Assembly: GCA_965285935.1 (NCBI GenBank)
Contig: OZ260667.1
Location: 8,308,001-8,372,000, forward strand
DNA: 64,000 nt
Source of the DNA: Ophelia neglecta
Lineage: Eukaryota
Direction of reading: 5' to 3'
Shown here: positions 40,632 through 64,000 of the stretch, piece after piece
How the letters are laid out: every line of letters begins with the position of its first letter
Position numbering within the stretch: position 1 is the first letter of the stretch
Translations under genes and position numbers: made by a program
Notes under the pieces: model-generated
What the model saw: the letters and a program-made list of their open reading frames with translations, nothing else
The model's database searches: none
Told to the model about the DNA's origin: nothing

Positions 40632-41093
40632 CTATTGATACTGCGAGGGACCCCATTCGATCTGATCCAGATAACCAGGTCCACCCTCGTCCATTCTTCT
40701 CTGCCCGTCTCCAGGATGGGTCATATGCAAATACCCCAAGTCATTTTCTTGTCTATGGCTAGTACCCATGTCAAGTCCTGCCGCAGGATTCACGACTCCT
40801 CTTTGATGAATCTGTCCTCTTGTTTCTTCGTTCATTTGTTCGACGAACCCTTCCATATCGGTACCTATACTGACACTTGTTACAACCGCGGCCATATTTA
40901 TGCCATTTCTCTCACGTCTCTTACTCGGGGGCGTTGGTTTCCTTCTTTTCCATATACAAGCACCAATAAGGAAAGCCAAGTTCATAAACACCAACCCTGC
41001 CACTGAGCATCCAATGATTATGGAAAGACTGATGGTGCCTTCGTTGTAACGAACAACACCTACTTGGTGTAGGGAGCTGTACCCAATTTGAAC
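40632..41093 (-). CDS. Gene 2 terminal exon: transmembrane helix and cytoplasmic tail
   Basis: IIIGCSVAGLVFMNLAFLIGACIW followed by KRRK; tail contains GYLHM and GYLDQI. Confidence 0.88.
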   Translation of the reverse strand, partial: VQIGYSSLHQVGVVRYNEGTISLSIIIGCSVAGLVFMNLAFLIGACIWKRRKPTPPSKRRERNGINMAAVVTSVSIGTDMEGFVEQMNEETRGQIHQRGVVNPAAGLDMGTSHRQENDLGYLHMTHPGDGQRRMDEGGPGYLDQIEWGPSQYQ

Positions 41094-44000
41094 CTATAAT
41101 GTCAATAACTTTGAAATGATATGTTACAACGATTAGATTCAAATTCCAAGGATTTTTAAATATAAAAACAATGCACAAAAAAACAGTGTTCCTCACCAGA
41201 AGGTAATATCTGTTTGTTCCTAAATTATGCTCGTCCGGTTTCTGGGTTGGTGGTGTATAAGGCGGGAGACACAGCAGTTCATTGTCCAGTAACTCGTCTA
41301 TCGTACACTGACCATGTCCTAATGTCACATTGTAGTCATTTACTGTGCAGCCTCTAGTCATCGATTTACCCTACAACATAAGAACTTATTTTATAACGCG
41401 AAATACCATACAAACTCCACAGAAAACATATCCAAGGTAAGAATATAAAAGGACCCAGTTACTGTACTCCTTTCATATTTAAAAACCTGTCTAAATGCCT
41501 CTGAGTAATGTATTGTGTCAAGAGACTTTATAATCCAAGTTGACGGTTCCTGACGATTTTGGACAGATTTAGTTGAATATTCTTAGTGAGTCATTTTGCA
41601 TTGTGTGCTGGTATCCACTGTCGCTTTTTTCAACACCTTTATCTGTGAATTATTTGACAAAACCTTCCTACCTCAATGGAAAAGTATTTCCCAGGTTCGA
41701 TAACCCTTTCCTCAAATCCATTGATTATAGGATCAGAGAAGAGTTGCAGTTGACTATATTCAGGGAGTGTAGCTGTGAGGTTTCTGTATGTTGGGACTCC
41801 ATCCAGTGACAAGCCCAGGTACAACTCGTAGTAGTCGACCTGGTCCTCTCTAATGTAACCTGTCGTGTTGGGAGTCCGGCATTTCATCTTGCTAAACGTG
41901 ACAGTGTCTTTGTCGCATGGCTTTCAAGGCAAATGACAAAGGTCATAAAAAAGCATGTCTCCCTTGTGAACGGATTTGTTACATAATTCTACTTTTCTGG
42001 ATTTATGATTTGTATTTATCTGCCGGGTATTAACTCTGATTGTCTCTTTTATTATCAAAATATCATAACGATGTTAACATATATGTTTAGTATTAAGATA
42101 ATTTGTATTGCCTTGGGATGATTAATACATTGAATACACTGAAATGTCATCATTTTATTTACTGTATTTGGTATTTTTTATTTTCATGTTCTATGCCACA
42201 AGAAAAGTCGCGCCTATGATACATACTGGCGTTCTGACGGATCAATGGTAAAAAATGTAAGGAACATCACATATGAGGTATTTTCTGCCGAAAGGTGGCC
42301 GTTTTGGGTATGCGTAGCCGAAGATCATAATTTAGGTTCGCATAGCTTACGCAAGAAGATTGAAATGGTAGTAGCCTCAATGGCATCGTATGGTATTCCC
42401 GACATAAAAGTCACCCGAAAAATATATGTGTTAAATTTGAAGGATATATTCTGGTCCTCTTTTGATTATTCCTGTTCAAAAACGATAAAGCTACAGAGTG
42501 ACTGTTTACCAACTCTTCAACTTGACCGATATAAACAGTATATGTATAATTTATCACAAGGCATATACTATATACAATATATGATTGACGCAACACTATC
42601 GATATAAAGTTGCCGTCCAAGTCCTATATCAAACATTTTCAAACCTCTTGTCGCGAAGCCCTTCAGGGTCCTCTGATGGTTTTTACACAGGCAGTAGTGT
42701 AGTGAAAAGTTGTTATTTTAAGACTTACTTTAGTCAGTTCTATCTGTTTGGTTTTTGCTGCCTGGTTCTTGGTAGACAGTGTGAGCTTCAGAGCAGGATC
42801 CGATACTGAATCTAAATAACGGCCTTCGACTGTTAATTTTGTACCACCACTGTCGGGGAAGAATATGGTTACATTATTGAAATATAATTAATAAATGTTT
42901 CGTGGTTTTAGAACAAAAGTCTTTTAATAAAAACAAAAAGTTATTTAGTATTTAAATTATTCGCCCTAATAATTAAATAAAGTATTCTAAGAAGCAGTAT
43001 CCTATTTGTATTAGCGCCAATCTAACCACATCCCCTCCCTTCAGTTTTGTACCGAAACAATTGTAACTAACTGTGTGTTGGCGGTAAACCAGAACAGTAT
43101 CATTCATACATATACACATTAACACAGATTCTGAAAGATTGACGGTATAAATCATTCTTGTGATTGATATGCACAAATATATGCGCAAACGACACAGACG
43201 TCTTTTTGTGTCGATTTAAGCCACCATAAAAGGAGTAAACCGGAACCTTATGAACACAGTGCGGAAGCCTGTTATTCGATTTTCGGGTATTGAGACAATT
43301 CAATATAGCTTCTTCGTTGTGCGTTATCAACTGTTGTAAATAGAAACTACGGACATTGTTGGCAAATGAATAAGCGATAGGGGAATATTTGTTTAGGGAC
43401 ACAAAACTACATTGGCATCTGAATACTTAATGTACTTAAAGTTAGCTCAAATCTTTGATAGACTACTTTTGTATTTGGATGAATTGAATTTAGGCAGAAC
43501 TCGGACTACAAAATGTACTGTAAAGTACCTTCGTATGGTTTCAAGTGGGTATATGTTCGATACCATTGGGTCCGGTTTATATGTGAAGGTGAATGATGAG
43601 TTAATAGAGGAACCATCCTTCAACTGGAGTGTGATCGACAATGCTTCTTCTGTCACCAATCCCTTTGGTGTCAAGAAGGTAATTGCGGTAGGTGTCCTGT
43701 GGGATAAGAATGTAATTTCAAAACTCAATTGTTTGTTGATGAGTATCGTATCGTCTTACTAATCTATGATTGCTATGTCCGTCGCCTAACTGCAGCTAGT
43801 AATTTACATTAACCGTCAAATTAATTGGACATAACTCTTCTTACTACGCTATATTTAAGGCGAAAAACATATCGAAATATCGCGAGATGTTCACCAGTTA
43901 GTGATGTTAAAATCGAGCCACATTTACTCAGCTTCGACAAAAAGAAAGGTCCTCATATCACTGCTATTATGGTAGTAAACATTCCATCGTGAAAAGTCAT

Positions 44001-47000
44001 ATAATACCATTGGTATGTAGAAATTCGCACTGCTCCAATTTTGATTGATCCTAGTTGTTTTGGTCGGAGATTTATCACGTTAATTGTTAGCTCACTACCG
44101 CCTGATATCGGACCATCTTGGGGTAAAACCCCAGTCACTTAAAAAGAAAGTTGAATCCATAAAAATAATGCAATCGTTCCAAGTCGTTCCATGAGCTAAT
44201 TTTCAACAACAACGTGTCAGCCAACCTCCATTGTGATCCTTAAATACCTGAAAAGTCACTACGTGAAGGGCTCCCCATATTCGCTACACTCTAGTGGGTA
44301 CATACATTCAGAGACCAGTATCCTATGTTATTCCCACATATAGTGCTTTTATTAATACTTCACCGACATTTTAATACATAAAAAAATCATTGTTGTATGT
44401 CCTATGGAGTACAGCAACCGCTCTTTTTAGCAGAAATCGGAAACAGGTTGATACTCTCCCGAACCACTTTATCCTTATAGCCTACTTGTAGTTTATATTA
44501 TTAGATGATAATTCTTTATGTATAAAATCAATGCTGTTTATGTGGGTGGATGTTAGAATGTATGAAAGGAAGGCATTTCATTAATTCTGGGTGGATGTTA
44601 GAAGACATAAGAGAATAAACTGTGGGTTGATGTAAGAAGATATCAAAGAAAGGCACTACATAAACTCTTGGTGAATCATGTTATGGTGATAAGATGAAAA
44701 GGCACTTTACCTTGGGGTATCGTTCTTTTACTGACCGCTGCAAGCATTATGGACAAAACAAAACACATGAATCATTATTTGCATTTGTTTTGTATGGGGT
44801 ATATACAATTCCATGCGAGAATATTATTGTTTAGTGTTGTCACAACATACACACACTTGTATCAAAATGTTTAGTTTATTCGAGCATAATTCGGAGGTGT
44901 CAATCCTGAAAGGGCTTCGGCGACAGCGAGGACAATGAAAGCAATACATTACCTAGAGGAAGCAATGCAATTTAACTACATTTCACTGAAATTCCACAAT
45001 GACTTCCACATACATGTAACTCACATGGTTTCTGAACGGATTTAGCCCCGTTGAACCCCTCGAACTGTTTCGTTCACACAGCATTTAGGCAATTCATATA
45101 TTTACCCTGATTGAATTGCAACATTTAGTTTCCGAGTTAGTTTCGTCGATGAAAAGATGCATTGTCCCTTTTGACAAATTGCTATAACATATAATGATGT
45201 TAACAAAAGACCTTGGATTACCATCGCATATCACCCCTGCATCAAATTCATGAGTGCAGCTGTGCTCTCCAGGAATTCTGCGGGGACAGGACGCCAGATA
45301 ATATTCTGACCCGATGCACTCCGTAGAACTGTGCCACACATGTCCAATCCCGGGGCCGAAATAGGCATTTGATTTAGCCTCCCCTCCGCTGTATCCAAGC
45401 TCTCTACACACCACTCTGGAATACGAATGTACATAAAGAATGGATAATATACCGAGAAAAAGGCACAAAAAGGTAAAATATATTATCCTGGTGTAATAAT
45501 GTATCTTTGCCGATGTTGAAAGATGTTCGTGCCTCTGTTTTGCTGACAAAAAAAAAATTCCGATTTGTTATGGATTTCCAGATTTGTTTAAATGAAAAAG
45601 GCTTCTCGATAAAGTATCCACCATCTCATTTAAAGGTCATATTGAGACATTTGATGAAAATATTTCAAATAAATTAGTGCATTTTTAGTAATAGTTTACC
45701 TTTTTTCGAGGAAAAATTATGGATTGACTGTATTTTGTTATCCCAGTCAATTATTCTTAAAGTGAAAGATGACTAACCATTTTGTATTTTCATCGTATGT
45801 CAGTCACATTATGCAAGCATTCGTCTTATTGGAGAAAAGGTTATTTGAGAGGAAAATTGATTTATCAATTGGTCAGTTGCTCCTTCTTAGTCATGATGTC
45901 AAATGGCTGTACATCAATCTATGCATACCTGGCATCATTGTCATCCCAGTCTTTACCACAAACAGTCCCCCAGGAGCCATCGTAGTAAACCTCAACACGC
46001 CCTGCATATTTAGTGACTCCACCAACTATTCGAACTGCATCTGCAAGTCAGAGACAGTGTAAGTTCTACTATTCAAAATATTGTTGTGACGTCTCTCCAT
46101 TGTTTAAGCACTAGATTCGGAAGCACGAAACTACTGTAGCTACATGAACTGTTACCGTAGATTCGTGCATAGGAATCTACTGCCTAAAATATTTCAAAAC
46201 ATAACATAACAAATTAAGCAATATTGCACCCGGTTTATTGCCCTTCAATTGAATCACCCTGCGATACGTGCGCTGTGTGCCTGGCACTGGCGATCTCCGA
46301 GAGCGACATGCGAACGGAACCAGTGTATGAGTATTTTCTTGTTCTCAGAAGAGCACGGGTACTACGCTGGCCACAGCACACAGTGTGAGGTCCCTTTATA
46401 CTGAGGCAGTTAAAATTGACTTGGCTTTGCCCTGACACCGGCTGGTGTAATTATTTATAACGTATTTGCATCGCTATAACAGTAATTTTTTTTTTGCCCT
46501 GCCGTGGATGGTTCAACAGTTGCAACACACTGAATTCCCATTGTAAATGATCTCTGATTTTTAACTTTTTGCGTTTTTCCAATATGCCGCCCTCTTTTTC
46601 TGGTTGATATTGGACGGATGTTGTATTTGGATACGTCCCCACCATCGGACAATTGACTCCCAGTAATAGATTCGTAGAGGTCGAATCACCTGCTTGATGG
46701 CGATATTTTCCACATCATCCAGATCTGGGATTATGCCTTGTATACGTTTAGAAATTCTGGTCACAGTCTGGATTACACATGGTTTAAAGAGTTGAGAAAT
46801 CTGGCCCAAAGGAACGTAATAAAATTGAAGAAAACAAAAAATGATTCAAAGGGTTAATGGTTGTGCTTAAAAATGATGTCTATTCTAGGTTGGTAAATCT
46901 AATTGTTTAATGAATATAGGCATGAGATCGTACAATGATTAACACTTTCTTCTGTCTGTAAAATTAGTAGGACGAATACCAAGAATATAATCCATATTAA

Positions 47001-50000
47001 TAATATTCGTGTCGGATTCAACAGAGATAGTACCGGGGGCATTGTGAAACCACATATCTTTATCTTGTCATTTGTAAATTATGTGGTGCCGAGAGTGCTC
47101 AAGCAGGCCCCCTCTTGAATTCTGTCGGTTTTAAGATTTAACAAATGAAATAAACATATTGACTAGCACAATAAATATGATGGTAGCTGGTGTTTGTAAA
47201 CACATTATACTTTTTGGCTGATTTACAAGGATCCAAACCAATGGCAGTGTACTGTAAGTAATTCTTTTCATCCAGTTGTACTGAATATTAACTTTCATGG
47301 GTAGTTTGATTGAATGCCACGATGCATTAACTTTGGTTAACCCAGATCATACATTGCATGGTGGCTTAATACATTGGGTTAGGACCAGCAAGTATCCTTT
47401 AGTGCACTTACCTAAAATTGATCATTAGGTTTAACGTTCATTTAATATTGTAGTGTAAGTAAAATAAATGTTTACCTGTTATTGAACACAAACATTCCGC
47501 CCTTGTGCCACAAGTTATACTCAACCAATTAAATCCACCACCTTGAAATAAGCAACTGCCTGATACATTTTTCGGGTAACCTGTGCACACAAAAACAAAG
47601 ACAAGGTAATAGTTACTTCTCTGCTGCCTAGAACACATATACGGTTTGTGGTTTAAAATATCTTACCACTCTTTGTCCTAGTTTTTGGAGAAAAAACATA
47701 TTTACTTTATGAGAATTAATAAACGGTTTATTACCTATTCTCTTATATAAACATAGTCAATACAAAAAGAGAATTTTTTGTTCCATTCCATTAATCAAAA
47801 ATAGTTTGGAGCTGTTTCAAAAACGGGAATAGTTTATTAAATTTCAAGTTAATGGCACAATTATCAACGTTAACTCATAAAACTGGCAGGAGGGAGTGGT
47901 ATTTTCCCATCCGCCATTATAAAATGTAGTTATTTCAAAATAACCTACATATTTATATTTACTTAATACTTGTAATTCTTAGACACGCCACATGCGGCCT
48001 ATGCATCATTGTAGGTATAGCGAAACTAGCTAGATGAATTGGTGAATTGGCCGTTTGTTGGCTGCCATTTGACTGAGGTTAGGGGAGGGCCTCTCCTGGG
48101 CAGGAGCCTAGAATAGAGGGGGGCCAAGGGTTCTACTTGATTCTTTTTTCAGGGGATATTTGAACGACTGCATGCAACCGACAGGCTGATGAATTTACCC
48201 TTTTATCCAAAAAGCACTTCACTTACTATGATCTATAATAAATGTTGTGTTACGGACGTGTGATAACATACAATTATTCAATGCTCCACATACAAATGGC
48301 AATTTTAAGAAAAGCGTTTATCTAGGATACACATGAAACTTTCATTTCAATATCATTTACATTATGGAAAGGGGCCACAGAAGGAGTTCATGTTATGGTT
48401 TTTATGGTGTATAAATTGGTCCAAGATATGTATTTTCGGTTCTGGTTATTATCGTTAAGCAATAAGAGTAAAGGCAAATGTTCAGGAAACCGCATGTAAG
48501 ATTAAAACGCCACCACATCATAATTCCAGCTGCTGCATGCGATATGGTGGAGTTAAACTAATATATATTTTAACATTGAAACATGGGTATGTGAGTGTAC
48601 TGTCACAGGGGACTCACCGGAGTTCCATTGTGTCCATCCAAAGGGGGTGCCGTCCCGCCAGGTCCAGTGAAAGTTCCTATCATTAGTGCCTCCCAGCCAT
48701 ATGGAACTCCCGCCTGATACCTCTATGGATAGTAAGCTATAGTTATTGATCACTGAGGGTGTTGCAATGGACTGGGCTTTTGAACCAATGGACCAAATAT
48801 AGGTGAAAGCAGTTAACGAAGGAGATCCGCCTCAAACCTGTATACGAATACTACTGGCCACTTAATACCACCGATAGAACCGTCGAAGGCATAGGCAAGT
48901 GATTTTTTCGGCATATGTCAAATGACCGTCTACCAAATATTTACATTACATCTGTCGCGGTGTGCAGTGTACTCCAAGTAGACTCCAACAAGGCCCATAA
49001 CAGATATATACAATTGTTAATTACTTACTATTAATAAATTCGTTTTCCTCTGGCGATTTAGCAAACGTTATTGAGGCTCCGAGAGATTCACAATACCGTA
49101 CTGCTCCTCCATATGTTGAAAAACATTTTTTATATATATAACAGCCGCGAACTTTGTCATTATAGCTCCAGCCTACGTCACAGTCTGAAAATGATAATAG
49201 AAAGATTCTCACAGTCAGTATCTTCTGATGTTGAATATTCGTGTTGAAGCAGGGAGCGGCCCAGCTTCTTGTATACGATCAACATTGTTTCAGGCTATCA
49301 GTTGTGACGCTCTCGCAAGAAAACACTCGATTTAAAAGTATGTTTACTACCGCTGAAAATATAGGTTCACAAATGAAGAAAAGTGTTGACTGCGTCCAGG
49401 CATACTTCATTTGATTCTACGACATGAGGACTACTTTTTAATTACGGTTGTACCCTACCACTTAGGGTCAAGTCGTATAATACAAAAAGGTATAAAATAC
49501 CATAGGTGATTAGTTTACAAGGATACACTCCCTGGAGAGGGGGGGGGGGCTGTTTCCTACACCAAACGGATATGTGATGCCCAGCCTCCGCAAATTATTC
49601 CCTCGCCATTTACAAAATTCGGACGCTATAGTCATTTGCAAAAAAATGCTGATTTTGCTTGTTTTTTGTTTATTTTTTTTCAAACAAGTCTTAGGCTTAA
49701 TTTTTGCTTCGTTAGCCTATGATGTGAGCAAGTAATTTGTTTCTGTTTTTTTTCTTGCTAATTCAGTCTAATGATTTGTAGTATTCTTGATAAAGCTAGG
49801 TTCCTTTTTTCAGCCGGGATAAAACTAGATCGTAGCCATTACCGAAATCATGAAGAACACACCCCTTACGATTTAAGAATTCGCGAAAAGACACCCCTTA
49901 TAGGCAACATATACCCGTGCAGGAATATGATGTATGTCCCCCCCCCCCCCCCCACACACACACTGCTCGGAAAACATTACACTTCCTAGAGCAGTCAGCA

Positions 50001-50178
50001 TAAGCAGTAAAGTACCTGGAAGACACCCCCCCCACCCCCCCACCCCCCCCCCCCGCCGTCTCCTAGTAAGGGAAATACAGGACCTACCTTCTGGGTATAA
50101 TCCATGAGCATGTGATGCGCACATACATGCGATTTGTAGGATGGTCCAACAAAGCTTAAGGAAAACAGCTTGCGCCAT
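40632..50178 (-). CDS. Gene 2: C-type lectin - SRCR - IPT/TIG stalk type I membrane receptor, about 697 aa
   Basis: Exons 50178-50088 (signal MAQAVFLKLCWTILQIACMCASHAHG), 49184-49029, 48722-48618, 47580-47476 (CTL), 46040-45929, 45415-45222 (SRCR), 44737-44711 (linker), 44137-44008, 43696-43529, 42849-42729, 41920-41672, 41370-41197 (IPT), 41093-40632 (TM and tail). Total 2094 nt, all GT-AG and phase-compatible. Confidence 0.88.
41197..44137 (-). CDS. Gene 2 IPT/TIG domains, plexin/MET-like stalk (5 exons)
   Basis: VTGVLPQDGPISGGSELTI; FTFTYKPDPMVSNIYPLETIRSGGTKLTVEGRYLDSVSDP; MKCRTP; VTLGHGQC.....NELLCLPP. Confidence 0.85.
45222..46040 (-). CDS. Gene 2 SRCR domain (2 exons)
   Basis: AVRIVGG...AGRVEVYYDGSWGTVC...WD..DAR / VVCRELGY...AYFGPG.G..W....C.GSE..L..C......SC.H..DAGVIC is canonical 6-cysteine SRCR. 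Confidence 0.95.
47476..49184 (-). CDS. Gene 2 C-type lectin domain (3 exons)
   Basis: DCDVGW....GCY...YC...GA...S.EENEFI / IWLGG.....WTWRDGTPFGWTQWNSG / YPKN...C...W...C......C. Confidence 0.9.
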
Positions 50179-52586
50179 CTGAATAATTAAACAGCATAAT
50201 TCTACTATCACAATGTATCACTAACAGTGGTATTGTACATGGAAAGAAACTATATAAATTGCGCTGGAAAACTGGGAATTACGGCTTTTCAACTATCCAG
50301 TTATTTCAGGGATGCAAAACGATTACATCTTTCCGTTCTGTTTTCAAAATCAATCAATATGAGGATGGTAGCATTAAGACACATTGGACTCCGGAAATTA
50401 AGCTTCACGCACAATTAATTAATCAGGTTTAAGTTCTGAACCATTAAGACTCCGTTTTATTGGAAATAGTAATGGTTTCTGTACACCTTAATGAGAAAGT
50501 AACATCGGCAATGTATATCTATGAGCTATCTATTATTGTGATCCCCCGCTCCTTAACACATGTGAAATAGTAATATGGCGGTGTTTGATGTGGTTTACAA
50601 ACTACCTACCCAAAATGCCTTCCCTATTTGAACATGCACATTGATAGAAAACATATGGAAATGTTTTTAACCTAGCCGACATGTAATAAATGCCCCGCTG
50701 CACATTCAGACAAGTATCCACTATGGTTTTATGCCAAACTACAGTGCCAAAATATAAAAAATCGGTCAAAGAAACATGATTTAATTTTTGCAATTAAGTT
50801 TTCCTGGAAAGAAATCTATTATTTTGATGGATGTCAATGTTGTTTGGTGTTAATTCCTAGTCAGAGCTACTAGATTTATTTGAAATCATTTGTGCTGTAA
50901 ACAAGAGTTACATTAATGGACCAGATGGGTACCCTAGAAAATGCATTAATATCTAACCCCAAGGGGGGCTTCCCAAGTAACACAAAACATGTGTGCGATT
51001 CGAGAGAGTAACATAAATATACCAGCTGGCAGCTGGATACCCTCGAATGTCTATTATTAGAGCTCAAGAAGGAATAGCTAGTTACCTACCTGATAAACGC
51101 CGCGATTTGCTGTAATATACGGCTAAAGTCGCCAGCTATCCAACTGTAGATAACGTCTGGTGACACACTTCCTTGTCCTGAATTTCTTATAGAACACACA
51201 TAATTTTGTCTCAGTCTGCACGCCGTTTATTTTCTATAGCTTTATAGTAAGCAATCTTCCATGCATGGCTTCGTCCTACCCAATTTAGCTGTAGCCAGAC
51301 TCATGGGCACATGTGTACTTTTTCTTTCCATCTTTTCTGTCTGTATTTGGCGTGAGTATAATGTTTCATCCCCGGCAAAGTTAGCTATAAAAACAATCTT
51401 TATACCAAGACGTCAATGCCTTTCAATACAGCGCGGTTTTATTCACTGAGGTAGGATGTGTGGTAGGAAGGCGGAGGAAAGAAGGGAAGGGGGTGCGGGT
51501 TAGGGGACGGGGGTAGGGGGAATAGGGGCGGAGTAGACAATTAACGAGTTGTCGATTACAGGAGTATGTAGGTAGGGGAGTATGGGAATGGTGGAGGGGG
51601 GGGGGGACAACATTCAGACGCAGTGGTTAAACAATTACGACATTTCTCTGTCGTATTTTAATGCAGGTGTCCCAACACGCTGAATAGGGAAAATAGGAGG
51701 GCAAAAGCCCTCATCTTTGCCCATTGGCAATATAGTGCCGTAGGTTATATTATTATTATTTTATATATATTGCATTTATTTGCTAAATAAAAACTTAAAA
51801 CCATATACTTCTAATGCGTTGTGCATTGTAAAACAAAGCAGAATTATATAAGAAACTAGACAAAAGGTGGACAACAGTTACTCAATATTACCAGCTAATT
51901 CGTATGCTTTCAACAGTAAAACGTAAAAACCGCCAAGGAAGTAACTTCAGTGTATATGTCCGTGAAATGTATACACTGTAGGCCATGCGGTATAAAAGGT
52001 ATGTCTCCGAATTATATTTAAAATTGCTATGGCGTCTGATTGTATCAGGTCCTAGGGATGGTTCTGAACAGGCACAAGGAAAGCAGGGCATGCTTTGCGG
52101 CATTCATGCGTTAGTGTAACATACATGTTAGTCTACAAATGATCCGCTGTCTGGGTAATCTTGTTCACAGTGGCTTAAAGCTGAGGCAAGGGTCAAAAAG
52201 GGAAAAAATAACATTTTTAAATTTCATTGAAGTGTCACAAATACCAATTATTTTGTTAAATGTCCATGTAGTGGCACCAATACCAATTTATATTTTATAT
52301 TCGAGAAATAATCATCCTTTGTAACACCCCGGAGACAATTAAAGCTTAAATGATCGTGGCTCATGTTACCTTATAAATTTCTTCCATATTTCATGTGATA
52401 TCAAGCGTAAAATCTTATCCTTTTAGTTATATTAACATGTGAATTCATTCTTAAAAATTAAATTGTTCATTTCGAAGATTTTTCCATGATTTCATCATCA
52501 TGCAAAGTGAAATAGGATGCTTTTTCAATTAGTTGATGTTTAATAAGGATATGACTGTTGCTTGTGTGACCCAGGGGGGTTGTGTA

Positions 52587-53315
52587 TTAGTCCAGAGGAC
52601 CAGATACCAACTGGGTTCTGTATCTATCCGGCGGTGGTGTGCTGTCAAAAGGACTGTAATCTGGCGGTGCACCATCTCGAGGCAGCCTTCGCCGTTTGTT
52701 GACGGGATGGATGCAGTCGTCCACTATTGGGATGTGTTTGTTTGAGCTTCTGTATTGATGGCCTTGAAAGTTGATTGATGACGGGCACCCTTCGCCTCTC
52801 TCTGGCTGGTGTATTGGTCTTCTTGTCTTGTTTTCTCTATCTGGGACCTGTGGCTCGTTTATCATGTACCCTTGGTCATACTCTTGCCTATTCCTCTCTA
52901 CTATATTCATCCCATCCGGCCGGTACGTTGGTATTCTAGTCCCGTTTTGCCTATATGCGTCGCCAGGTTCTTTTATCAGGTGTAGATACCCATGGCTTTG
53001 CTCCGGTTTATTTCTCTTATTTAAGTCCATCTCGCGGAGCGGGTAATTGTAATCATGTCCATCATGCCCCATAACGTTCATATCTGCTCCTCGGCTGATA
53101 GTATCCATCTGCCCGTCGACGTTTACACCGCTTCCTCTCCTCTCCAACGCGGACTCGGGTTTATATCTTACCCTAATGCAGACACAGAAGACGATAGACA
53201 ATATGATGATCAGCGCTCCAGCGACTGAGCATCCTATTATCACATACAACACAGTCTTGTCTGTGTTGTACCGGACAACACCAAGTTGATAAGTGGCACT
53301 GAATCCAACCTGTAC
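52587..53315 (-). CDS. Gene 3 terminal exon: transmembrane helix and long Tyr/Pro-motif tail
   Basis: Within ORF 52587-53372: VLYVIIGCSVAGALIIILSIVFCVCI then RVRYK; tail has GYLHL, GYMI and PPDY. Confidence 0.88.
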   Translation of the reverse strand, partial: VQVGFSATYQLGVVRYNTDKTVLYVIIGCSVAGALIIILSIVFCVCIRVRYKPESALERRGSGVNVDGQMDTISRGADMNVMGHDGHDYNYPLREMDLNKRNKPEQSHGYLHLIKEPGDAYRQNGTRIPTYRPDGMNIVERNRQEYDQGYMINEPQVPDRENKTRRPIHQPERGEGCPSSINFQGHQYRSSNKHIPIVDDCIHPVNKRRRLPRDGAPPDYSPFDSTPPPDRYRTQLVSGPLD

Positions 53316-56300
53316 CTGTAAGACAATATAATAGTTTTCTGTTGTTCCTTGTAAGAAAGAAATCAAAGTCAAAATACCAACAAATAATACTAAGAAAGCA
53401 CCATAGGATTTAAATCCAACCGATGCTGGTCTCCAAACACCGGATGTTTTGCATTTATAAAGCGAACAAGTATTTCATATCAAGCCAATTAGCCTCTTTG
53501 TGGCACCTTTGGATATAATGTGCTATTGATATTTTATTCTATGATTGTCTGAGGCAGTTGAGATAATACAAATGTAGCTCACAAACCTGTAAGTAGTATG
53601 CTTTCTCTCCCAGTAGTATCTCATCGGGTTTCTGGCTGGGTGAGTCACCAGGAGGTAAACACAGCAGTTCATTATGAACTAACTTTTCAGTCTGACACTG
53701 ACCCTGTCCGATATTAATTATATAGTCTTCTTTGGTACAGCCCTTGTCCATTGACTCTCCCTACAAAAAAGTCATAATTGACTACATCATAATTAGGTCA
53801 TCATCTTTGATCATTGCAAACATACATACTTACTCTTTCATTTAGTCTTCATTAATGCAATAATGATATATAAGACTGGTTGCTGGTCAGTTTGGAATCG
53901 CTTTTACATTGGTCTAGAATCGCTTTTTTACGGTTTGAGATATTTCTTTATACTATAATTTAAGACATTGCTGTGAGAATATAAATTGCCTCATTGAATT
54001 TCACTGGGCATTTGTATAACAAAATGTGGGACCAAACTGAAAGTAGGAATTGATTTTCTATATTCAAGACAGCTGGGAAATGATGGGTAATTTCGCACAC
54101 TGAGTAGTATTCTGCGCACAACTTGTTAATTACAGTTCATTTCTAAAGAAACCGCCATTGTGCCTTTTTACTCTACTTCCTGGGCGGAATAACACTGCTC
54201 ACAGCACGGATAACGCGATGCGTCAAATTATCCTTCTATACTATGCGCGAAAAAAGCCTACTTTTTGCGAGAAGTAAAGCTAGTTTCTGTGCCAAATAAA
54301 AAAAGTGAAATAACCGAACTCTAGTAATTTAATTTGCATGTTAGAAATTGTTAGCAAAGTTCTCGATTAGCGTATAAGCGTCACAGATAGCCAGATTTTC
54401 CTTAAATGCGATATAACATAACTAACTTCAATTGATAAATATTTCCCAGATTCTATAATTTTCTCTTCATCAAATGTCTCAAACTTTGGGTCGGCAAACA
54501 CAATTAATCGTGAGTATTGAGGCAGGGAGGCAGACAAGTTCCGGTAGGTTGGTACTCCATCTAGCTTCAACCCTATATACAACTCATAGGAGTCTATATT
54601 GTCCTGACTGATGTAGCCTGTCGTGTTGGGAGTCTGACATACCATCGAGCTGTAGGTTAATGTAGTCTTGTCACATTCCTGTGGATACAAAACCAACTGG
54701 TTTTAGCTGGTTTTAGCGAGCTACTTAATATTCTTCAATAAATGCAATATTTGGAAGTAACAATCAGATTTGGAACCTTACTGGTCATATAAAAACACAT
54801 GATTATGTCATTTAAACGTCTGGGAGAAGATACGGTAGGCAAACCAAAATCGTTAATCAAAAATAGTCCATAGAATCAGTCAGGGACCGTCCTGTGCTAC
54901 GTCATTCACAGGAGTCATTCTCTTTCTAGATTAACCAGTCCTGGGATTCGTTTTGTTATTTGAGAAAATGATGTGTTGTAGGGGCTTACACTAGTTAGTT
55001 CAACTTGTTTTGTCGCTGCCTCCTTCTCTTTTGGTTTCAGATTAATTTGTAGTTCCGGATCCGCCACTGAATCTAAATACTGTCCTTCTACTGTTAATTT
55101 TGTACCGCCGCTGTCAATCAAATAGTTTGGCTTATTATTATTTAAAACAAGAAATTTTAAGTTTAGTTCGGGAAAATCTATGTGACATATACAAACACAT
55201 ATACACAAATAATTAAAAAAAACTTTATCGCCTTAGCTCCATCTTTCGTCGGCATCAATGACTTGTATCGAAAACAGAACAAAAGGTGCGCAAAAATCAA
55301 ATAAATCTGGAAGTACCTTGTAATTGTGTCCAGGGGGTGAATACTCGCCACAATAGGGTCCGGTCTATATGTGAAGGTAAATGGAGAGGTGATAACTGTG
55401 CCGTCCTTCCTCAGGAGCTTGATAGGTAAGGCTTGATCTGTTTGATTGCCTTCTGGTGTTCTCAGAAAAAATACCGAAGAAGCCCTGAGGTGTATAAATG
55501 GTAGATCACGAGTTAATGTGTTTACTAAATAATTGTTTTGCAAAGATTGGTATTCATTTCAGATTATATATTATTCAAGCTCATGCATTTATTTTCTCCA
55601 CACGAACGACGTGAAGGGGAATAATACTCGGCAGAATAAATTTGTCATTTAACTAAGGGGAATAAGTTTCAGTATTTTACGAATTCATTGACATTAGACA
55701 GTTTAATTAATACCAAGCAAAGTTGACAATTTGATGATTTCCCACAATAATTGATTTTAATTGCTCTGGAAGAAGCCTTGTCGTCGTAATATTCATCTTG
55801 GTTCCGCCGGAAGTTGGTCCATGGCCAGGTACAACATGTGTCACTACAGAAAATGGGAAGTTAATGAATGCAAAGACAGAAAAACACAGCATAAACCTGA
55901 AAGTAGGACTTTTCATGATACCAATAACATGATTGTAGATATATATGGTGGTTCCTTTCATACAGTCCTATGGATTCATTTACTTATGATTTATCTATTC
56001 CTTCATAACCATGAGTTTACATATTGGTGATCATTAAAAGAGGTAATATTTTTTAACCTAAGGGAGGCAGTTCACAGCTAATAGGGGCTGGACGGTGCTT
56101 CTTCATCGCAAAAGATTACCTTTTTGATATTGACTTTCTATCAAAAAAATTATTTCGAAGATTATCTTCTAATGTTTATTTGCATAAGGGTAACGTTTTA
56201 CCAAAAGGTTGGCTTTTCGCAGATTTCCTTTTTAACGGTTATTTTTTTTTTTACAAATTTCTATAATATTCACACCCTAGGCAAATGATGGCAATAAAAG

Positions 56301-59300
56301 AAATAAAATAGATGTATCTGATATGTGGTAAGATGACTTGATTATTAGCTAGTAGTGTGTGGTATGCGGTAGAGATAACTAAGTAGTGTTATACCTTTCG
56401 ATGCAATCGGCCTTTTAGTGGTATCCGCCTGCACTGAGGCAGTGGTCGATTCAGTTATCATCACGTCTGTTACTTATTCGTTGATAAAATAAAAAATGAT
56501 GCAATTACATAAATAGACATTTTTATTCCGAATCTACTTACTAGTAAATAACATTTTAAAACAATATCTTCCAATACACACTAATCTACTTTTAAGTAGA
56601 TTTAAGGGAGTATTTTTGAGATTTGTTTTCTATTAAAAAAAAATATATCGAAGATTATCCATTTTATGTATATTCCTTGAGGGCAATGTTTTATCAGAAG
56701 GTTGGCTTTTCGCAGAATTGCTATCTAACGTTAAGTTTTTTTGAGAACTTTCTATAAAAATCATATCCTAGGCACATGGCTGTAAAATATGATATGTGGT
56801 AAGATGACTTGACTACAAGCTTTTAGTGTGTGGTATGCAGAAGAGATAACGAAGTAGTGTTATACCTTTCGATGACATCGGCTCTTCCATCTTTTTGGTG
56901 GTTGCCGTCTCCACTGAGTCAGTGGTCGATTCAGTTATCATAACGTCTGTTACTTATTCGTTGATAAAATAAAAAATGCTATAAGTACATAACTGAAATT
57001 CTCTGCCCCGAATATACTTACTAAGAAAATAATAGTTTAAAACAATGTCTTCCAATACACACTAATTTACTTTTTTTTAGTAGATTAAGGGAGTATTCAT
57101 GTTTAATAATTCTTCTTTGCCTTTGTTGGATATCCAATTCTTTTTGGTATAAGATCGTCTTTGTTTACCTAGACACATGACTCCTGCATCTCTATCGTGA
57201 GTACAGTTATGTTCCCCGAGTTCATTTTGTAAACAAGACTCCAGAAAACGTTCTGATCCATTGCACTTGACAGAACTGAGCCAGATCTGTCCATTACCAG
57301 GGCCGAAATATGCTCCTGTCTTAGCTATCCCTCCACTATAACCCAGCTCTCTACACACTACGCTGTAATAGAAAGTTCCGAGGATTATAGACAATGTAGA
57401 CTGGAAAAAGAGAGAAGTAAACCATTTTTATAGTTATAGTTAAGATGGTGGAGGTTGGGAGAAGATGGGTGGGAGGGCGAGGCTTATTTAGTCGTACTTA
57501 TGCAGTCTTCATTTGAGCAGAAGGTACCCTTCTTTAACACACAATGTAAAGGTAAGCAGGTTGATCAAACGTGGTGTCTGTGAACCTGCGGGTGAACCTG
57601 CTGTATACCAGACATTACTCATGTATTACGTATAAGCTGCGATTTATCGATACCGTGATCAGCCATTTATTTTGTGTAGACCTGGCGCTTATTATAGGCC
57701 GGCGTTTATAGATAGTGGTCATCTCGAAGACTGAACGTTATCACGAAATTACACGACTTTACCCGATACTGCATTATGGAAAATATGGCAATACCGGGCA
57801 TCTTCATCATCCCAGCCTTCGTCACAAGCAGTCCCCCAGGATTCATTGCGGTAAACTTCCACAAGACCTTCGTATGAAGTTGTTCCACTAGTCAGTCGGA
57901 CTTTATCTGAGGAACAATGTAAATCTAAACTACGAATAGCTTCATTTAAGTATTTAAATTATCAAAGACTGCTAAAGGTTTGAAGAGACTGGAGAGACAT
58001 ATAAGCCTATACGCTATCGTGATACTTTTTTTAGAGGATTTTCCAGGTGGGAAACGTGCTTAGTACCCGTTTTTGAACAAATTATGTGTTTCAGCTCATT
58101 GCAGTCACTGTCGTGCCAAGTACCATCAAATTGCATGCACAAGCAATCAAAGCCTGTTATATTCTTCGGCTGCCCTGAAAATACAAGGGATTGTATAATT
58201 TCGACCTTTACTAAAATTAACGCGTAGAGCTTAATTTTTTCATATAGATTCAATAACAACTAAAAGCTTTTTCACATATACGCATCCATTGGAGGACTCA
58301 TGTTATATAATCTAAAGTATTTTTATTTGCCGGTATGCAGTTACTGGCCGTATTTTCCAGCAATAGGCCACAGAGTTTTTTTTTGATCGTGATACATATG
58401 TTGTGTGCTAATCTATGGCGGCACATCAAATGATAAAGAAAAGAAATAGCCTCGAATAATTTTCAAAAGAGACCGCAAAATAACCTTTTGTAAAATTATT
58501 TTATGATTCAAGTTTTCACACCTCTTGCATGTTCTTTGCATTTCGTAATATCAATATATGGCATTATAAGGCCGACAGTCGAAGACGGATATGACAGACC
58601 TTGGGGCGGGGGGGGGGGGGGGCAAATTTACTCGAAAATATCCAATCTGCGTCAACGGAAGTCCAAAATACCCCAAAACCAATGGATTATAAATGACTAA
58701 AACGCTCCAAAACGAGGAGTGCCTTGAAAGGAATAGCGAGGCTTCTTATACCATAATAAAGGAAGGCTACCAAAACCAAATAGTGCATCTATTGCATAAG
58801 CCTGTGTCTGGCATGGCCCGCAGAATTCGGCCAAAAACTCGCGGAACGGATCTTATTAGTCGAGAAAAAAACTTTGACTTTGCTGCCCAGAATCACGCCC
58901 GAAACGCGCGGACGTCCTCTAAAAACATGCTATAATTTTGGTGCCGCGCGAACCACGGTTGGTAACAAAAATACACCTTTTTCTAGGAATGGGTGTATAT
59001 AAAGGATGTGTGTACAAAGCAAGTATGCAGTGAACACCGATTTCTATACAAGTATAATCTTATTTGTCTTGGAACTGTAAAATTAAAGGCATTATTACCA
59101 ATAAATTGACAGGGGTATATTTGCAGACTGATCTAATTAAAGACATAGGCCTAAATAGAAATGTTCCCACCAGGATACCAGTTTGTCCATCCAAAGGGGG
59201 TACCGTCCACCCAGGTCCATTGACCTTCTATGACGATATCGTTCCCACCCAACCAGGGAATATCACTTGTTATTGTAAAAAGATCTGTGGAAAAAGAACG

Positions 59301-60252
59301 ACATTCAGTGCTAATTATAACTTCAGTCTCGACAGATATTCTACCTACTAAGAAAGTTTGATTCTTATATTTAAACAGCCCATTACATTGTCTTATGAAT
59401 ATTATTCACTTGCGCCCCCCTCCCTTCAGAATTAGTTTTTTTTTTTGCCCACCACGCAAGGAGACTGTCGTTATTGTATGGATTTGACGTCCGTATGTGT
59501 CCACATTACGAGCGACACCTTTCAACCAAACTTTATGTCTCATCTACCTAAGATAATTTGGTTTTCTTCCGGCGATCTCGCAGATGCCAAAGTACCTCCG
59601 AGGCCTGCGCAGACGAGTTTGGAATCGGCGTATCCAGAATAGAAAGGCGCGAATCGATAACATGCCCGAGTCTGATTACTGTATGACCAGTCGATATCAC
59701 AGTCTGAAAGGGAAAGAGACATTGATAAGCTGGTCTTTTTACTTGAAATGTTACCAGTAAACAGATAACCACTGTTATGGAAAGAGGTTTAATATCGTTA
59801 TCATCTTTTTGTTTAGGGCCATTCTCGGTGGTGTTTCCCACTTTAACGGATGAGATCGATCTGATGTAAAGAACCCACACACAATCTAAGCCCCTTGGCT
59901 TGGTCACCCTCTTAGGTCACTAGGGGAGGAGGGTCTGCTCTAAAGTGAGTAGGACAGTGAAGTGACACCGACAATGCTCACATTGCCGGTCTCATTTATT
60001 CCCGCGAGGGCCGCGAGGTAGAAAGGGGTCTGTGAGCAGGGTAGACTGCGAGCTTGTCTAGTCGATCCCTTCGTAGTATCGACTACACTATAAAACAATT
60101 TTTATTCAAGAAATCAATATGTTACGTTTGCACCTGGGAGTAGACTAAAGTAAGCCACAATTTAAAACTAGCCACGCACCATGTATAACATTGGCGTTCG
60201 CTATAATGCCGACAAATAAAAAACTACTTTAAACCGGGCTGATATCACACAT
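52587..60252 (-). CDS. Gene 3: paralogous C-type lectin - SRCR - IPT/TIG membrane receptor, about 827 codons; first exon uncertain
   Basis: Exons 60252-60180 (candidate signal exon with in-frame TAA), 59703-59548, 59284-59171, 58174-58067 (CTL), 57906-57795, 57362-57169 (SRCR), 56946-56866 and 56466-56395 (duplicated linker), 55843-55714, 55484-55317, 55110-54990, 54678-54427, 53760-53587 (IPT), 53315-52587 (TM and tail). Exon sizes 156/112/194/130/168/121/174 are identical to gene 2. Confidence 0.85.
53587..55843 (-). CDS. Gene 3 IPT/TIG domains (5 exons)
   Basis: VVPGHGPTSGGTKMNI; FTFTYRPDPIVASIHP; GGTKLTVEGQYLDSVADP; MVCQTP; INIGQGQC...ELLCLPP. Confidence 0.85.
56135..57075. repeat. Tandem duplication (about 480 bp) containing the gene 3 linker exon
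   Basis: About 56135-56595 matches about 56630-57075, including the exon and both splice sites. Confidence 0.85.
57169..57906 (-). CDS. Gene 3 SRCR domain (2 exons)
   Basis: KVRLTSG...EGLVEVY...SWGTACDEGWDDEDAR / VVCRELGY...YFGPGNGQIWLSSVKCNGSE..L..C...HNCTHDRDAGVMC. Confidence 0.95.
58067..59703 (-). CDS. Gene 3 C-type lectin domain (3 exons)
   Basis: DCDIDWSY...ACY...C...GGTLAS..S.EEN / PWLGGND...EGQWTWVDGTPFGWTNWYPG / QPKN...DCLCM..DGTWHDSDC.....IC. Confidence 0.92.
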
Positions 60253-62024
60253 CGTCTAGTTAAGTATAGGCCTATCCAGTCTAAAGCATTTTGATAGCCA
60301 AAATAAATAGTCTAATACCGCACAGAAAGTAAGACCATTCCGCACAGCATGAGGACTTGTTTCCATCACAAGGTCAAGACCATGGCAGCAGTTTATTGAG
60401 TTGTTAATTCCGCATAGTAAATAATCTAAATCCGCGCGCGAATAAAGCAAATTACTACGCGAAAATATCCGATTTTACCCTATGATATAGACATAAAACA
60501 TAGAGAACACGAATATATCAAATCTAGTATATTCAGTACCAATATTATAACCCAGCACTCCACAAGCCCCACTTCGCCAACATAATACACGTATGAAGAA
60601 AGTTGTACGGCGCTTCAGTATTAAAGCTGCACATTACTGAATATCTCATGGAAATTTGGCAAATACACTATCAAAGGCTTGTCAATGATAAGTAGACTTG
60701 ACTGGCGGTATGCCAGAAATACCAGAAGCCATTCATACTTATGTTTAATGTAAGCATGTATCTCAGGAATTCATCACTGTGTGCCGCGGTTATAATTAAA
60801 CTTAACCTGTGAAGCGTTCACAAGCTACTTCCTTGTGGCTTGGCTGAAAATGGCGGCAACGAAAACTGAAGGTCTCAAATATCACGTTCTAATTATTGGT
60901 TTATAATCCCATCAAACTATAAGGTTCGATCAGTCTGGTTTGGTAACATGAAAAACAGACTTTAATCGTTCAAATGTAAATTAAATATTATAATTAAATC
61001 TTGAAAACATGTTTTTTTTTGCATAATTAAGCAGCATTCTTTCGGCTATAGCCCAGAGCGTAAGCTACACGGCTTGTACCCCACACGGCTTTCACCCTAC
61101 GCGTCTTTATGATTTAAGGAAGATGAATATTGGAGGCAATATTTAGTGTCGACGGTTGGATTGAACCTAAGGAATGACAAACTATTTATGTTACATAACA
61201 ACACGGAGCGAAGAAACGTATTACGTGCCATATAGGAAAAGCTATGACGTCATTTAAAACAGATGGTGTCACTAGAAACCTCCTGTCTCAGAATCAAACT
61301 AAGTAATCGCTGCGGTGCATGATAAGGTAAAGAAGGATTATTTTTGTGCATCGGTTTTTTCCTCACGGGATATACACTAATTCTGCGCATAGAATAAGGA
61401 CGGGACTATATAGTTCGCGCATCGTTTAGTTTCATAAAGTAAGTTGCCTACCCTGCTCACAGTGCCAATAACGTGACTATAACCACTGTGATCTGTGTGT
61501 ACGTTGCCTTATTTCGCCCGAACTTAATGAGGCAACGCCTACTCACTTCAATCAACTAAAAAATGGGCAAAATCACCAGATTCTATCCTGCAGCCTTATT
61601 GGGTTAAGTTTAGTAGCGTTTGGGTTAGTTTTTCACTAACCTTCTGGCTCTAATCCATTGACATGAGGTATGTAAACACAACACCACTGTAAAGCGCTCC
61701 ACCAAACACCAAATATAAAGAGGTTTGTCATCTACACGGATAAACGCGTACATTTTAGAAATATTTAGAAATTATGCTTGTACATTTGTATAATATGAGT
61801 GCAATGTAGCATTATCATAGTCTGCTCACTTTCTGAAAGAACATATCATCGCATGTACTTACTGGGATTCCCGTGCCTTCTTACCACGTACTAATAAACC
61901 ATTAAACATTGTTATCCTTTTCATCAAAGTGACCCACTACACGTCCATCAGTATCTTATTATTAAAGGGTAAAAAAACTGTTTACAGTTATGAAATGGTC
62001 AATCATAACGTTTCCTAGATTCCC

Positions 62025-63573
62025 TAATCTTTGCAGAAATGCCGTTTGATCGATGCCTCACAACTAGTCTTGGCATTTCGTCATGCACACACAGAGTAAT
62101 AGATATTTACCAATCCTTTAGTACCGAGTACGTATGACAGCTGTAAGAAGTTTGTATTGCCTTTAATATTCTCTGTTTGCCTTTCAGTTTTATGTGGATT
62201 TACTTTGAAGAAGGCATTCAGACCCATAGTGCCTTTATGAATGTTCCCAGCGAGTTGAATTTTATGTGATTTCTTTCTGCATGCTAGACATTAAACGTTT
62301 CTTGTCTCGTCTCAATGGTTTTAACACATTAAGGTATTGACTATCACCACTGATATAGACACAGTTGCGTTGAGTGATCTGGGAAGTGGTATTCGGGTAT
62401 TGTAATGTGTACCCAACTAATTTGCCTTGTATCTGCTTTAAATTGAAAATCGTACTCGTCAGAACACGCTCATAAAACATGATTATGAAAAATAACTTTA
62501 ACGGCTAAAACGCAGCGTACCAATATTATATATCTTTAAAGTCGCCCAATTAGTCAGCTGCTCTTTCAAATTTAATCTTGAACTGTAATTTGAAAGGGGC
62601 AAAAAGGTATTCAGTTGTGTATATTAAGCTTGAAATTTATCATTGATTTGAGTTATCGGGAGACACAGGCCCAGTTTGCAAGCTGCCGATGCAAAATTTA
62701 ACTTTGACCTAAAATTTGAAAGTGCAAATCGCGTTATATGTCGTCAGTTAGGACTGAAGTGTGTTGATTTAACTTTATTTGTTACGTTTTTGCTTGTAGT
62801 TTCAATTTTACTTAAGAATTATATTGACAACTGCAACTGGCAGCATGCTCCATGTTTTAGTGGAAAAATATGGTTTGGCAAGTGGCAGCTGTCAACTGTC
62901 AACTGGCAGCCTATTTTAGGTAGGTATGTGCATACCATGCGCCCAGTTTGTTCATTCACAGGGGTGCCGCCCTGCCAGGTCCACTGATCTTCTATGTTGG
63001 TATAGTTCCCACCCAAACGGGTCAAAATAGAATGCTCCGTAGCCGTATGTGGGAAAGTTGCGCCGGTCAAAATTTAAATTCAATCTTGACAGGCATTTCC
63101 AGCCGATAAGAAGTTTTGATTTTTATTTGTAAACAGTTAAGGGTCCCCCGACCCCCATCCACAAAATAGTAAAAAAAAAAGTTAGGCCCACGTCATAATG
63201 TCACGCTGAGAACAAATAAGAAAAAAGAAAGTTTGTAGAATTGCTGGTTAGGAGCAAATGATAAACATGTTCGTCATCTCGGGGACCGAAACACCCTGTG
63301 GTATGTTCTCCCCCAAGCATTGAGTCAGTCGTTATTCTATGGTTTTAACATCCTTGCATGTTTTCTCAATTTTGTAAAAGACTACTTTCAAGGAGAGTTG
63401 ATGTGTACCTCGTTTACCAAATATTAAGTGGTTTTCCTCCGGTAACCTTGCAAATGTCATTGTGGCTCTGCGGGCTGCGCAGTCGGGGTGGCATGCGGTG
63501 TATGCACATTAGATAGAAGTGAACACGAAACAACCTCGAGTCTCAATACTTTATGACCAGAATACATCGCAGT
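62025..63573 (-). pseudogene. Decayed third paralog of the CTL-SRCR-IPT family (only C-type lectin exons recognisable)
   Basis: 156-nt exon 63573-63418 reads DCDVFWS*SIETRGCFVFTSI*CA...C.....TMTFARLPEENHLIF with two stops and intact splice sites. Exon about 63050-62936 (LGGN...EDQWTWQGGTP) has a frameshift and TGG>TGA. A possible third-exon remnant (CVCM...C...FCK) lies at about 62110-62025. Confidence 0.8.
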
Positions 63574-64000
63574 CTGAAAGGGAACATACAATTATATTAT
63601 CGGCCCCTTATTTCTAATGATTCCATTAAACAGATACTTTTTGTTTAATCGGCAAGGATACCAGAAAAGGCTAAAATAAGCCAATTGCAATACATGTTAT
63701 AACTAAATCTTGACGTAAGCTACGTGGCTTTAACAATATTTAACATCAAAAGAACAAGAAATGGGAGGCAATCTTAGGGTTGGTGGTTGGAACCGGGGGT
63801 GGTATTTGGGCATTGTAATGTTTACCCGGATATTGATTCTTATATCTGCTTTAAATTCAAATTCTTATTTATGAGAACTTGCCGATAATGCAGTAATATG
63901 CTAATTTTGTTCAGTGGGTAGAACTCAATGGCTGCCCTACTAGTTTATGTGGCCAAGAAAGAATGCAGACAAATTGCTACAGGTATGATAATTCAATGTT

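Follow-up and report, generated by a model that had tools for sequence, protein, structure and literature searches.

Class A scavenger receptors (MSR1, MARCO, SCARA5 and SRCL) and the group XIV C-type lectin-like domain (CTLD) proteins (CD93 and thrombomodulin) carry a recognition module, either SRCR or CTLD, on a stalk, have a short noncatalytic tail, and act in endocytosis or adhesion. The class A receptors are type II trimers with collagen or coiled-coil stalks, and the group XIV proteins have EGF and mucin stalks; to our knowledge, no IPT domain is found in either group. The crab protein SpBark is a type I membrane protein with both SRCR domains and a CTLD, and its CTLD binds microbes and promotes phagocytosis (PMC6716108). 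SpBark is about 2,860 amino acids long, with three dispersed SRCR domains, a CTLD near the transmembrane (TM) segment, and no IPT stalk (PMC6716108). A review of plexin and MET evolution lists the Met and Met-LP receptor tyrosine kinases (RTKs) and nothing of a C-type lectin (CTL) plus SRCR plus IPT kind (PMC6374515). Here, we describe two genes, A and B, in a 64,000-nucleotide stretch of the Ophelia neglecta genome (contig OZ260667.1; G000:C12:8308001-8372000, hereafter the window), which are predicted to encode type I receptors with a CTLD and an SRCR domain set on an IPT stalk.

We think it probable that A and B are old, intact tandem paralogs in a lineage-specific family of about 27 type I receptor genes, in which a constant chassis is combined with interchangeable heads and which most likely has a recognition, endocytic, or adhesion role dependent on adaptors or a partner kinase. 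As predicted from the exons, the chassis consists of three plexin/MET-type IPT domains (encoded by five exons and the first part of the last one), a single TM helix, and a tail without a known domain, and it appears to be joined through phase-1 introns to an exchangeable extracellular head.

Gene models and domain content

The minus-strand stop-to-stop frames between 40.6 and 61.7 kb fall into two colinear series of short open pieces, which are 32-63% identical between A and B when compared piece by piece. Exon boundaries were read off the sequence and afterwards checked from coordinates alone. The two genes are arranged head to tail on the minus strand and are separated by 2.4 kb. All junctions are AG...GT, there are zero internal stops, and both coding sequences have lengths divisible by 3. 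Intron phases are the same in A and B (1,1,1,1,2,1, then 1,1 for the two extra exons of B, then 2,2,0,0,0). Eight of the 11 shared exons ahead of the last exon are equal in size, and the remaining three differ by 3 or 9 nucleotides (Table 1). Both genes open with a 91-nucleotide exon, 5' of the lectin exons, that encodes a Met followed by a hydrophobic signal peptide; this exon could be located because it is conserved among B, A, and the paralog L031. Phase-1 introns flank every head module.

The two extra exons of B encode a predicted linker. Together with flanking intron sequence, they make up a tandem duplication with a unit of about 480 bp (56395-56946, minus strand), and such a duplication is a very simple means of lengthening the stalk in phase-1/1 steps. 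A Ser/Thr linker exon was also searched for in gene A and none was found.

Domain searches used single exons, or same-exon alignments from paralogs, and the solved-structure search set held 177,635 sequences. The three lectin exons of B match successive parts of Pfam Lectin_C with 14-17 bits each. The family profile of CTL exon 1 matched DEC-205 among the solved structures at 8.8e-28, together with CTLDs of PLA2R and MRC2, and that of CTL exon 2 matched a CTLD of MRC1 at 2e-8. The CTLD fold signature, a WIGL-type core with conserved Cys pairs, is present in A and B. Pfam SRCR is significant by itself in both genes, at 1.4e-13 in A and at the values given in Table 1 for B. Since the domain is split across two exons and has six Cys residues (one plus five per exon pair), it is best assigned to group A of the SRCR domains.

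Along the stalk exons of both genes, Pfam finds weak TIG pieces in order. The family profile of exon IPT1a matches IPT domains of plexin-A1/A4 and MET at 1e-9 to 7e-8, that of IPT1b matches MET 733-751 at 3.7e-4, and that of IPT3a matches plexin-A2 1144-1176 at 3.5e-4. Among solved structures, the stalk exon profiles match only plexin-A1/A2/A4 (residues ~925-1180) and MET (~640-750), in colinear order, and the relative P0040 matches MET 650-806 at 4e-7. Exon IPT2b had no Pfam match, and its profile had no solved-structure match; by language-model features, 27 of the 30 clusters nearest to this exon are TIG. The stalk reads as three IPT domains, each split over exons and colinear with the last IPT domains of plexin-A. 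The last exon contains the end of IPT3 and the TM helix, followed by basic residues and the tail.

Pfam found no domain, including no plexin RasGAP-type domain, in the tails of A, B, and five paralogs. With the P0071 and P0069 kinase domains as queries, tblastn found no kinase exon in the window or in 20 paralog loci, which extend about 2.2 kb beyond the IPT2b exon. The regions of P0131 and P0120 that hold Sema and PSI domains matched nothing in the window at E < 0.01, and the exon Pfam scans found neither domain. About 55-70 residues past the TM helix, the tails carry a motif of acidic residues followed by G-Y-L-x-(P/L/M), which is HGYLHL in B and LGYLHM in A. The core pattern [GD]Y[LI] is found in 13 of 19 tails, whereas 2000 shuffles gave 1.3 on average and never more than 6. 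In an Owenia RTK whose stalk is homologous, the juxtamembrane sequence HGYVAP resembles the family motif. Long tails, that of B included, have RRLPRDGA(R/P)PD near the C-terminus. The tail exon of paralog L038 (G000:C12:9452678-9462677, positions 699-1565, minus strand) encodes a 239-amino-acid tail with repeated Y-x-x-x-x-(L/I)SPI and an ITIM-like ITYANV.

A preliminary description of this DNA had proposed two head-to-tail genes with matching exons, a plexin/MET-type stalk, and a tail without catalysis. The gene models bear out the first of these, the exon profiles and the database relatives (RTKs and plexin/Sema proteins) the second, and the empty Pfam and kinase searches the third. It had also given both genes one layout of CTL, SRCR, Ser/Thr linker, IPT, TM, and tail; all of the domains were recovered, but a linker is predicted in B only.

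Table 1. Coordinates of gene A, gene B, and related features. Positions are those of the window unless a contig is given; exons are listed from 5' to 3', and those of A are written in that direction.
Feature	Position	Strand	Size (nt)	Intron phases	Remarks
Gene B, whole coding span	52590..61731	(-)			14 coding exons, 832 amino acids predicted; splice sites, phases and stops checked by coordinates; Pfam per exon. Predicted layout: signal peptide, CTLD, SRCR, two linker exons, three IPT, TM, cytoplasmic tail of ~194 amino acids
B exon 1	61641..61731	(-)	91	phase-1 donor	ATG and hydrophobic signal peptide; conserved with L031 and A
B CTL exon 1	59548..59703	(-)	156	1-1	Lectin_C positions 5-31; exon profile match to CTLDs
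B CTL exon 2	59171..59284	(-)	114	1-1	Core WLGG...WTW.DGTPFGWTNW; Lectin_C positions 38-74; exon profile match to MRC1 CTLD
B CTL exon 3	58067..58174	(-)	108	1-1	Lectin_C positions 79-107; QPK and WHD read directly
B SRCR exon 1	57795..57906	(-)	112	1-2	SRCR 3.5e-07, profile positions 2-33
B SRCR exon 2	57169..57362	(-)	194	2-1	SRCR 5.4e-17, profile positions 33-99
B linker exon 1	56866..56946	(-)	81	1-1	26 amino acids plus split codons, ~38% Ser/Thr; predicted
B linker exon 2	56395..56466	(-)	72		Tandem duplicate of linker exon 1; tblastn 69% identity; predicted
B IPT1a	55714..55843	(-)	130	1-2	N-terminal half of IPT domain 1; exon profile against plexin-A1/A4 and MET
B IPT1b	55317..55484	(-)	168	2-2	End of IPT1 and start of IPT2; TIG_SUH C-terminal piece; MET 733-751
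B IPT2a	54990..55110	(-)	121	2-0	TIG positions 14-37; colinear with database TIG proteins
B IPT2b	54427..54678	(-)	252	0-0	Most conserved exon of the family; 27 genome paralogs; TIG feature clusters
B IPT3a	53587..53760	(-)	174	0-0	TIG positions 29-68; plexin-A2 1144-1176
B last exon	52590..53315	(-)	726		End of IPT3, TM VIIGCSVAGALIIILSIVFCVCI, tail with HGYLHL, C-terminal RRRLPRDGAPPD, stop
Gene A, whole coding span	40635..50178	(-)			12 coding exons, 687 amino acids predicted; coordinate check; Pfam; exon similarity to B. Predicted layout: signal peptide, CTLD, SRCR, three IPT, TM, tail of ~100 amino acids
A signal-peptide exon	50178-50088	(-)	91		Conserved with B and L031
A CTL1	49184-49029	(-)	156
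A CTL2	48722-48618	(-)	105
A CTL3	47580-47476	(-)	105
A SRCR1	46040-45929	(-)	112
A SRCR2	45415-45222	(-)	194
A IPT1a	44137-44008	(-)	130
A IPT1b	43696-43529	(-)	168
A IPT2a	42849-42729	(-)	121
A IPT2b	41920-41672	(-)	249
A IPT3a	41370-41197	(-)	174
A last exon	41093-40635	(-)	459
CTL exon-1-like remnant	63413..63583	(-)			Two in-frame stops in the assembled haplotype; acceptor and donor intact
CTL exon-2-like remnant	~62957..63040	(-)			Degenerate; WLGG changed to TRLGG
Lone IPT3a-like relic exon	35523..35704	(-)			Frameshift and stop; 5 kb downstream of A
IPT2b-like plus tyrosine-kinase loci	G000:C1:120809589-120814763 and C1:122886852-122889716	(-)			Weak IPT2b-like matches

The paralog family, its constraint, and remnants

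The genome searched for paralogs comprises 762 Mb, and in it the IPT2b exon has 27 strong matches (E < 1e-15). They form clusters on C12 and C8, a few others being on C5, C7, and C24; the pair L013/L016 is probably a haplotig duplicate. We fetched 20 loci of 10 kb each, and the exon order from IPT1a to TM is identical in all of them. A genomic contig of another species, L051, carries these stalk exons too, and their order is unchanged.

Heads were surveyed in the same 20 loci as same-strand modules 5' of the stalk. CTL plus SRCR was found in six loci and CTL alone in four. Other heads are multiple TSP1 repeats in L045 (TSP_1, Pfam 2e-18), EGF in L043 (EGF_3, 7e-12), IgGFc-binding domains in L050 (IgGFc_binding, 3e-29), and long mucin-like exons with Cys-rich modules in L040 and L042. 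Five of the 20 (L034, L038, L039, L048, and L049) had no recognised head. The CTL-SRCR-IPT order itself recurs in at least six other loci. Phylogenetic analysis of the IPT2b exon placed A and B within a supported C12 clade of CTL(+SRCR) genes (support 96/95), and it also recovered sister groups with unlike heads, one joining TSP1 and CTL (100/99) and another joining CTL+SRCR and IgGFc-binding (98/92). Since sister chassis bear different heads and the head boundaries are of phase 1, head exchange by exon shuffling is supported.

In the comparison of A with B, dN/dS (the ratio of nonsynonymous to synonymous divergence) is 0.21 for the stalk and 0.29 both for the head and for TM and tail, and dS exceeds 1. 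These values of 0.2-0.3 in every part, together with the high dS, indicate that A and B are old duplicates under purifying selection. Between B and L031 (G000:C12:8454461-8464460), dS rises from 0.18 in TM and tail through 0.36-0.55 across the IPT exons to as much as 1.4 in CTL1, a mosaic gradient which suggests that the 3' ends of family members undergo gene conversion or recombination.

Upstream of B lies a third-copy remnant made up of CTL exon 1- and exon 2-like pieces only, and a search for SRCR, IPT, and TM exons between it and the first exon of B found none. In a second allele from the same individual, both stops of the remnant are sense codons (Ser and Tyr), through changes at 63552 and 63509, and the heterozygous sites in the remnant are 63509, 63550, and 63552. 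The pseudogene state of the remnant is polymorphic within one animal. The lone IPT3a-like exon downstream of A, with its frameshift and stop, reads as the leftover of another family member.

Contig word depth in three DNA runs of one sample was 15/12/4-6 over 57701-60473 and 32/27/11.5 over 61200-63700. The half-depth segment spans the lectin and SRCR1 exons of B, has no variant sites, and may be haplotype-specific or strongly diverged.

Three suggestions of the preliminary description take a different shape at the scale of the genome. What had appeared to be a two-gene family is indeed a tandem pair, but the unit is larger, with about 27 paralogs. Phase-1 exon shuffling, which had been put forward from the window itself, gains from the same chassis being found with TSP1, EGF, IgGFc-binding, CTL, and CTL+SRCR heads. 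The dead third copy does contain a CTL remnant with two stops, but it is only a two-exon fragment and its stops are polymorphic.

Other features were noted elsewhere in the window. A 466-amino-acid open frame at 28125-29522 (minus strand) matches a reverse transcriptase of the long interspersed nuclear element type (RVT_1, 1.8e-15), and a word-indexed protein search at E <= 1e-20 gave no match for it. An apparent further multi-exon gene occupies 900-13000 (minus strand), with a mucin-like T/S/P repeat exon at 4000-4683 and a weak NedA-like galactose-binding (F5/8 type C-like) match at 3118-3345 (E 0.003); it may be a lectin-type neighbour. At 17500-18450, G+C-rich tandem repeats with units like EEERGLGEGKRKGED are open in several frames on both strands, and this block looks like a minisatellite rather than a gene.

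Function and alternative readings

In a receptor of the kind that we favour, the head would bind a ligand, perhaps of microbial, self, or matrix origin, and a rigid IPT stalk would keep the head off the membrane. The tail, being noncatalytic, would then signal through the acidic-G-Y-L-x-(P/L/M) motif, which could serve either as a phosphotyrosine docking site or as a YxxPhi sorting site. An immune, allorecognition, or adaptor-signalling role is something that we infer, and immune, co-receptor, and allorecognition readings are not separable here.

Several observations weigh against this preferred reading. The splicing of head to stalk in A and B is predicted only, because the public runs that cover the locus are DNA, and the linker exons of B are likewise a prediction only. 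For the head-swapped paralogs, head and stalk were assigned to one gene from strand and proximity only. In the lectin exons, the Ca2+/sugar motifs (EPN/QPD and WND) are missing, with QPK/WHD in B and YPK/WLS in A, and sugar binding by these CTLDs is therefore doubtful; QPD is present in one paralog, L041/L044. By their sequence the exons can be classed as C-type lectin-like domains, so that the earlier proposal of two pattern-recognition domains is right in that a CTLD and an SRCR domain are there, but the label itself is not secure. In the tails of A and B, neither the immunoreceptor tyrosine-based inhibition motif (ITIM, scored as [SIVL]xYxx[IVL]) nor the corresponding activation motif (ITAM, scored as YxxL/I-x(6-12)-YxxL/I) was found, nor was NPxY. 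Finally, position +3 of the tail motif is Pro in most members, and the fit to YxxPhi fails in most of them.

Another question is whether the gene models might be an artefact, with the lectin/SRCR exons and the IPT/TM exons belonging to separate adjacent genes or to untranscribed pseudogenes. Invertebrate multidomain models are often mispredicted, and RNA runs covering the locus were sought among public runs and none was found, the three covering runs being DNA whose contigs span the introns. We nevertheless regard an artefact as very improbable: strand and phase are continuous from signal peptide to TM, with no stop, second signal peptide, or terminal exon between, the CTL-SRCR-IPT order is repeated in at least six paralogs, head and stalk are both under purifying selection, and in one database protein, P0135, SRCR and IPT share a single open reading frame. 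An allorecognition or self/non-self system, in which highly polymorphic heads mediate recognition between individuals or gametes, would draw on the half contig depth over the head exons of B (57701-60473), which suggests a haplotype-specific or diverged segment, as well as on the polymorphic stops of the third-copy remnant and on the B/L031 divergence gradient (dS 0.18 in the tail, 1.4 in CTL1). These data, however, come from one individual and 6 kb, half depth can be explained otherwise, and head dN/dS of 0.2-0.5 offers no hint of positive selection at the level of whole exons, so that we hold this reading to be improbable.

Two further possibilities, each of which we consider unlikely while giving it some weight, connect the family with RTKs. 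A and B could be kinase-less partners or decoys of IPT-stalk RTKs of the MET-like or Owenia type, pairing through stalk or TM and tuning developmental or adhesion signalling rather than immunity. The colinearity of the stalk exons with RTKs of Owenia fusiformis and Ptychodera flava would fit such a role, as would the likeness of the tail motif to the RTK juxtamembrane HGYVAP. The genome also has kinase exons 2-5 kb downstream of weak IPT2b-like exons at two C1 loci (C1:120.81 Mb and C1:122.89 Mb), which are probably MET-like or other IPT-stalk RTKs and would be natural outgroups for the family. The widely varying recognition-type heads, however, fit ligand diversification better than a fixed co-receptor, and the family is expanded and clustered as fast-evolving receptor families are. 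A bolder account, also doubtful in our view, makes the family a kinase-less sister of the IPT-stalk RTK lineage that turned into a diversified, polymorphic system of non-self recognition, in which phase-1 shuffling swaps CTLD, SRCR, TSP1, EGF, and IgGFc-binding heads on the unchanging plexin/MET-type stalk and the signal passes through a conserved juxtamembrane G-Y-L-x-P site for phosphotyrosine inherited from the RTK ancestor.

On the preferred reading, that of a recognition, endocytic, or adhesion receptor dependent on adaptors or a partner kinase, the family would illustrate modular receptor evolution within one genome, a fixed stalk-TM-tail having acquired at least five kinds of head via phase-1 introns. 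If expressed and signalling, its members would be an additional class of receptor in the innate recognition of invertebrates, and the tail motif could show a noncatalytic receptor reusing an RTK juxtamembrane motif. The value of these points is limited in that novel domain combinations are frequent in invertebrate genomes and that we infer the function of the family.

Comparison with known systems

When the IPT2b exon profile was run against 1.84 billion representative proteins, it gave 155 matches, the best at 72 bits, and most of these are short fragments from unannotated eukaryotic assemblies. Among the best 150 of the 155, TIG is found in 15, a tyrosine kinase in five, SRCR in one, and Lectin_C in 0. 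The named matches are Owenia fusiformis RTKs, a Ptychodera flava RTK, a Lottia Sema-domain protein, and a Priapulus plexin; the source animals are an annelid, a hemichordate, a mollusc, and a priapulid, and the stalks of these proteins are colinear with the exons of A and B. When protein databases were searched with the P0135 and P0029 stalks, hardly any matches came back, and a word-indexed protein search from single exons cannot see full-length kin. Being nearly missing from protein databases, the family appears to have been overlooked by annotation pipelines. Database and full-text literature searches found no named family with CTL, SRCR, and IPT and no annotated close relative, in agreement with the earlier impression that the architecture is uncharacterised.

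In layout, P0135 is a close counterpart. This unnamed JGI hypothetical protein of 945 amino acids has four SRCR domains, three IPT domains, a TM helix, and a Tyr-rich tail in one uninterrupted open reading frame. It shares with A and B an SRCR domain directly on a three-IPT stalk, followed by TM and a short, noncatalytic, Tyr-rich tail. It differs in having no CTLD and four SRCR domains, and it is distant, its identity to the exons being 29-38%.

The nearest named proteins found are the RTKs of Owenia fusiformis (CAH1793776-8, with Ephrin_rec_like, TIG, and kinase) and Ptychodera flava (XP_070544682.1), whose stalks show 31-39% identity to exons IPT2a, IPT2b, and IPT3a in colinear order. The Owenia RTKs additionally resemble the family in a juxtamembrane G-Y-V-x-P. 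In contrast to A and B, these proteins have a tyrosine-kinase domain of their own and another head, and the similarity is low (profile E ~3e-6).

Among characterised proteins, Bark beetle/Anakonda and the crab SpBark come nearest in placing SRCR and CTLD on a type I anchor, and A and B, at 687 and 832 amino acids, have one SRCR domain each. No sequence relationship of A and B to Bark or SpBark was seen. An apparent mention of an IPT stalk in SpBark proved to be a false lead, as the word in the paper is IPTG (PMC6716108).

The stalk itself points to MET/RON, the Met-LP RTKs, and the plexins, which like A and B are type I membrane proteins with membrane-proximal IPT domains (PMC6374515). Unlike these, A and B are without Sema, PSI, kinase, and RasGAP domains and have only three IPT domains, and their head is made up of CTLD and SRCR.

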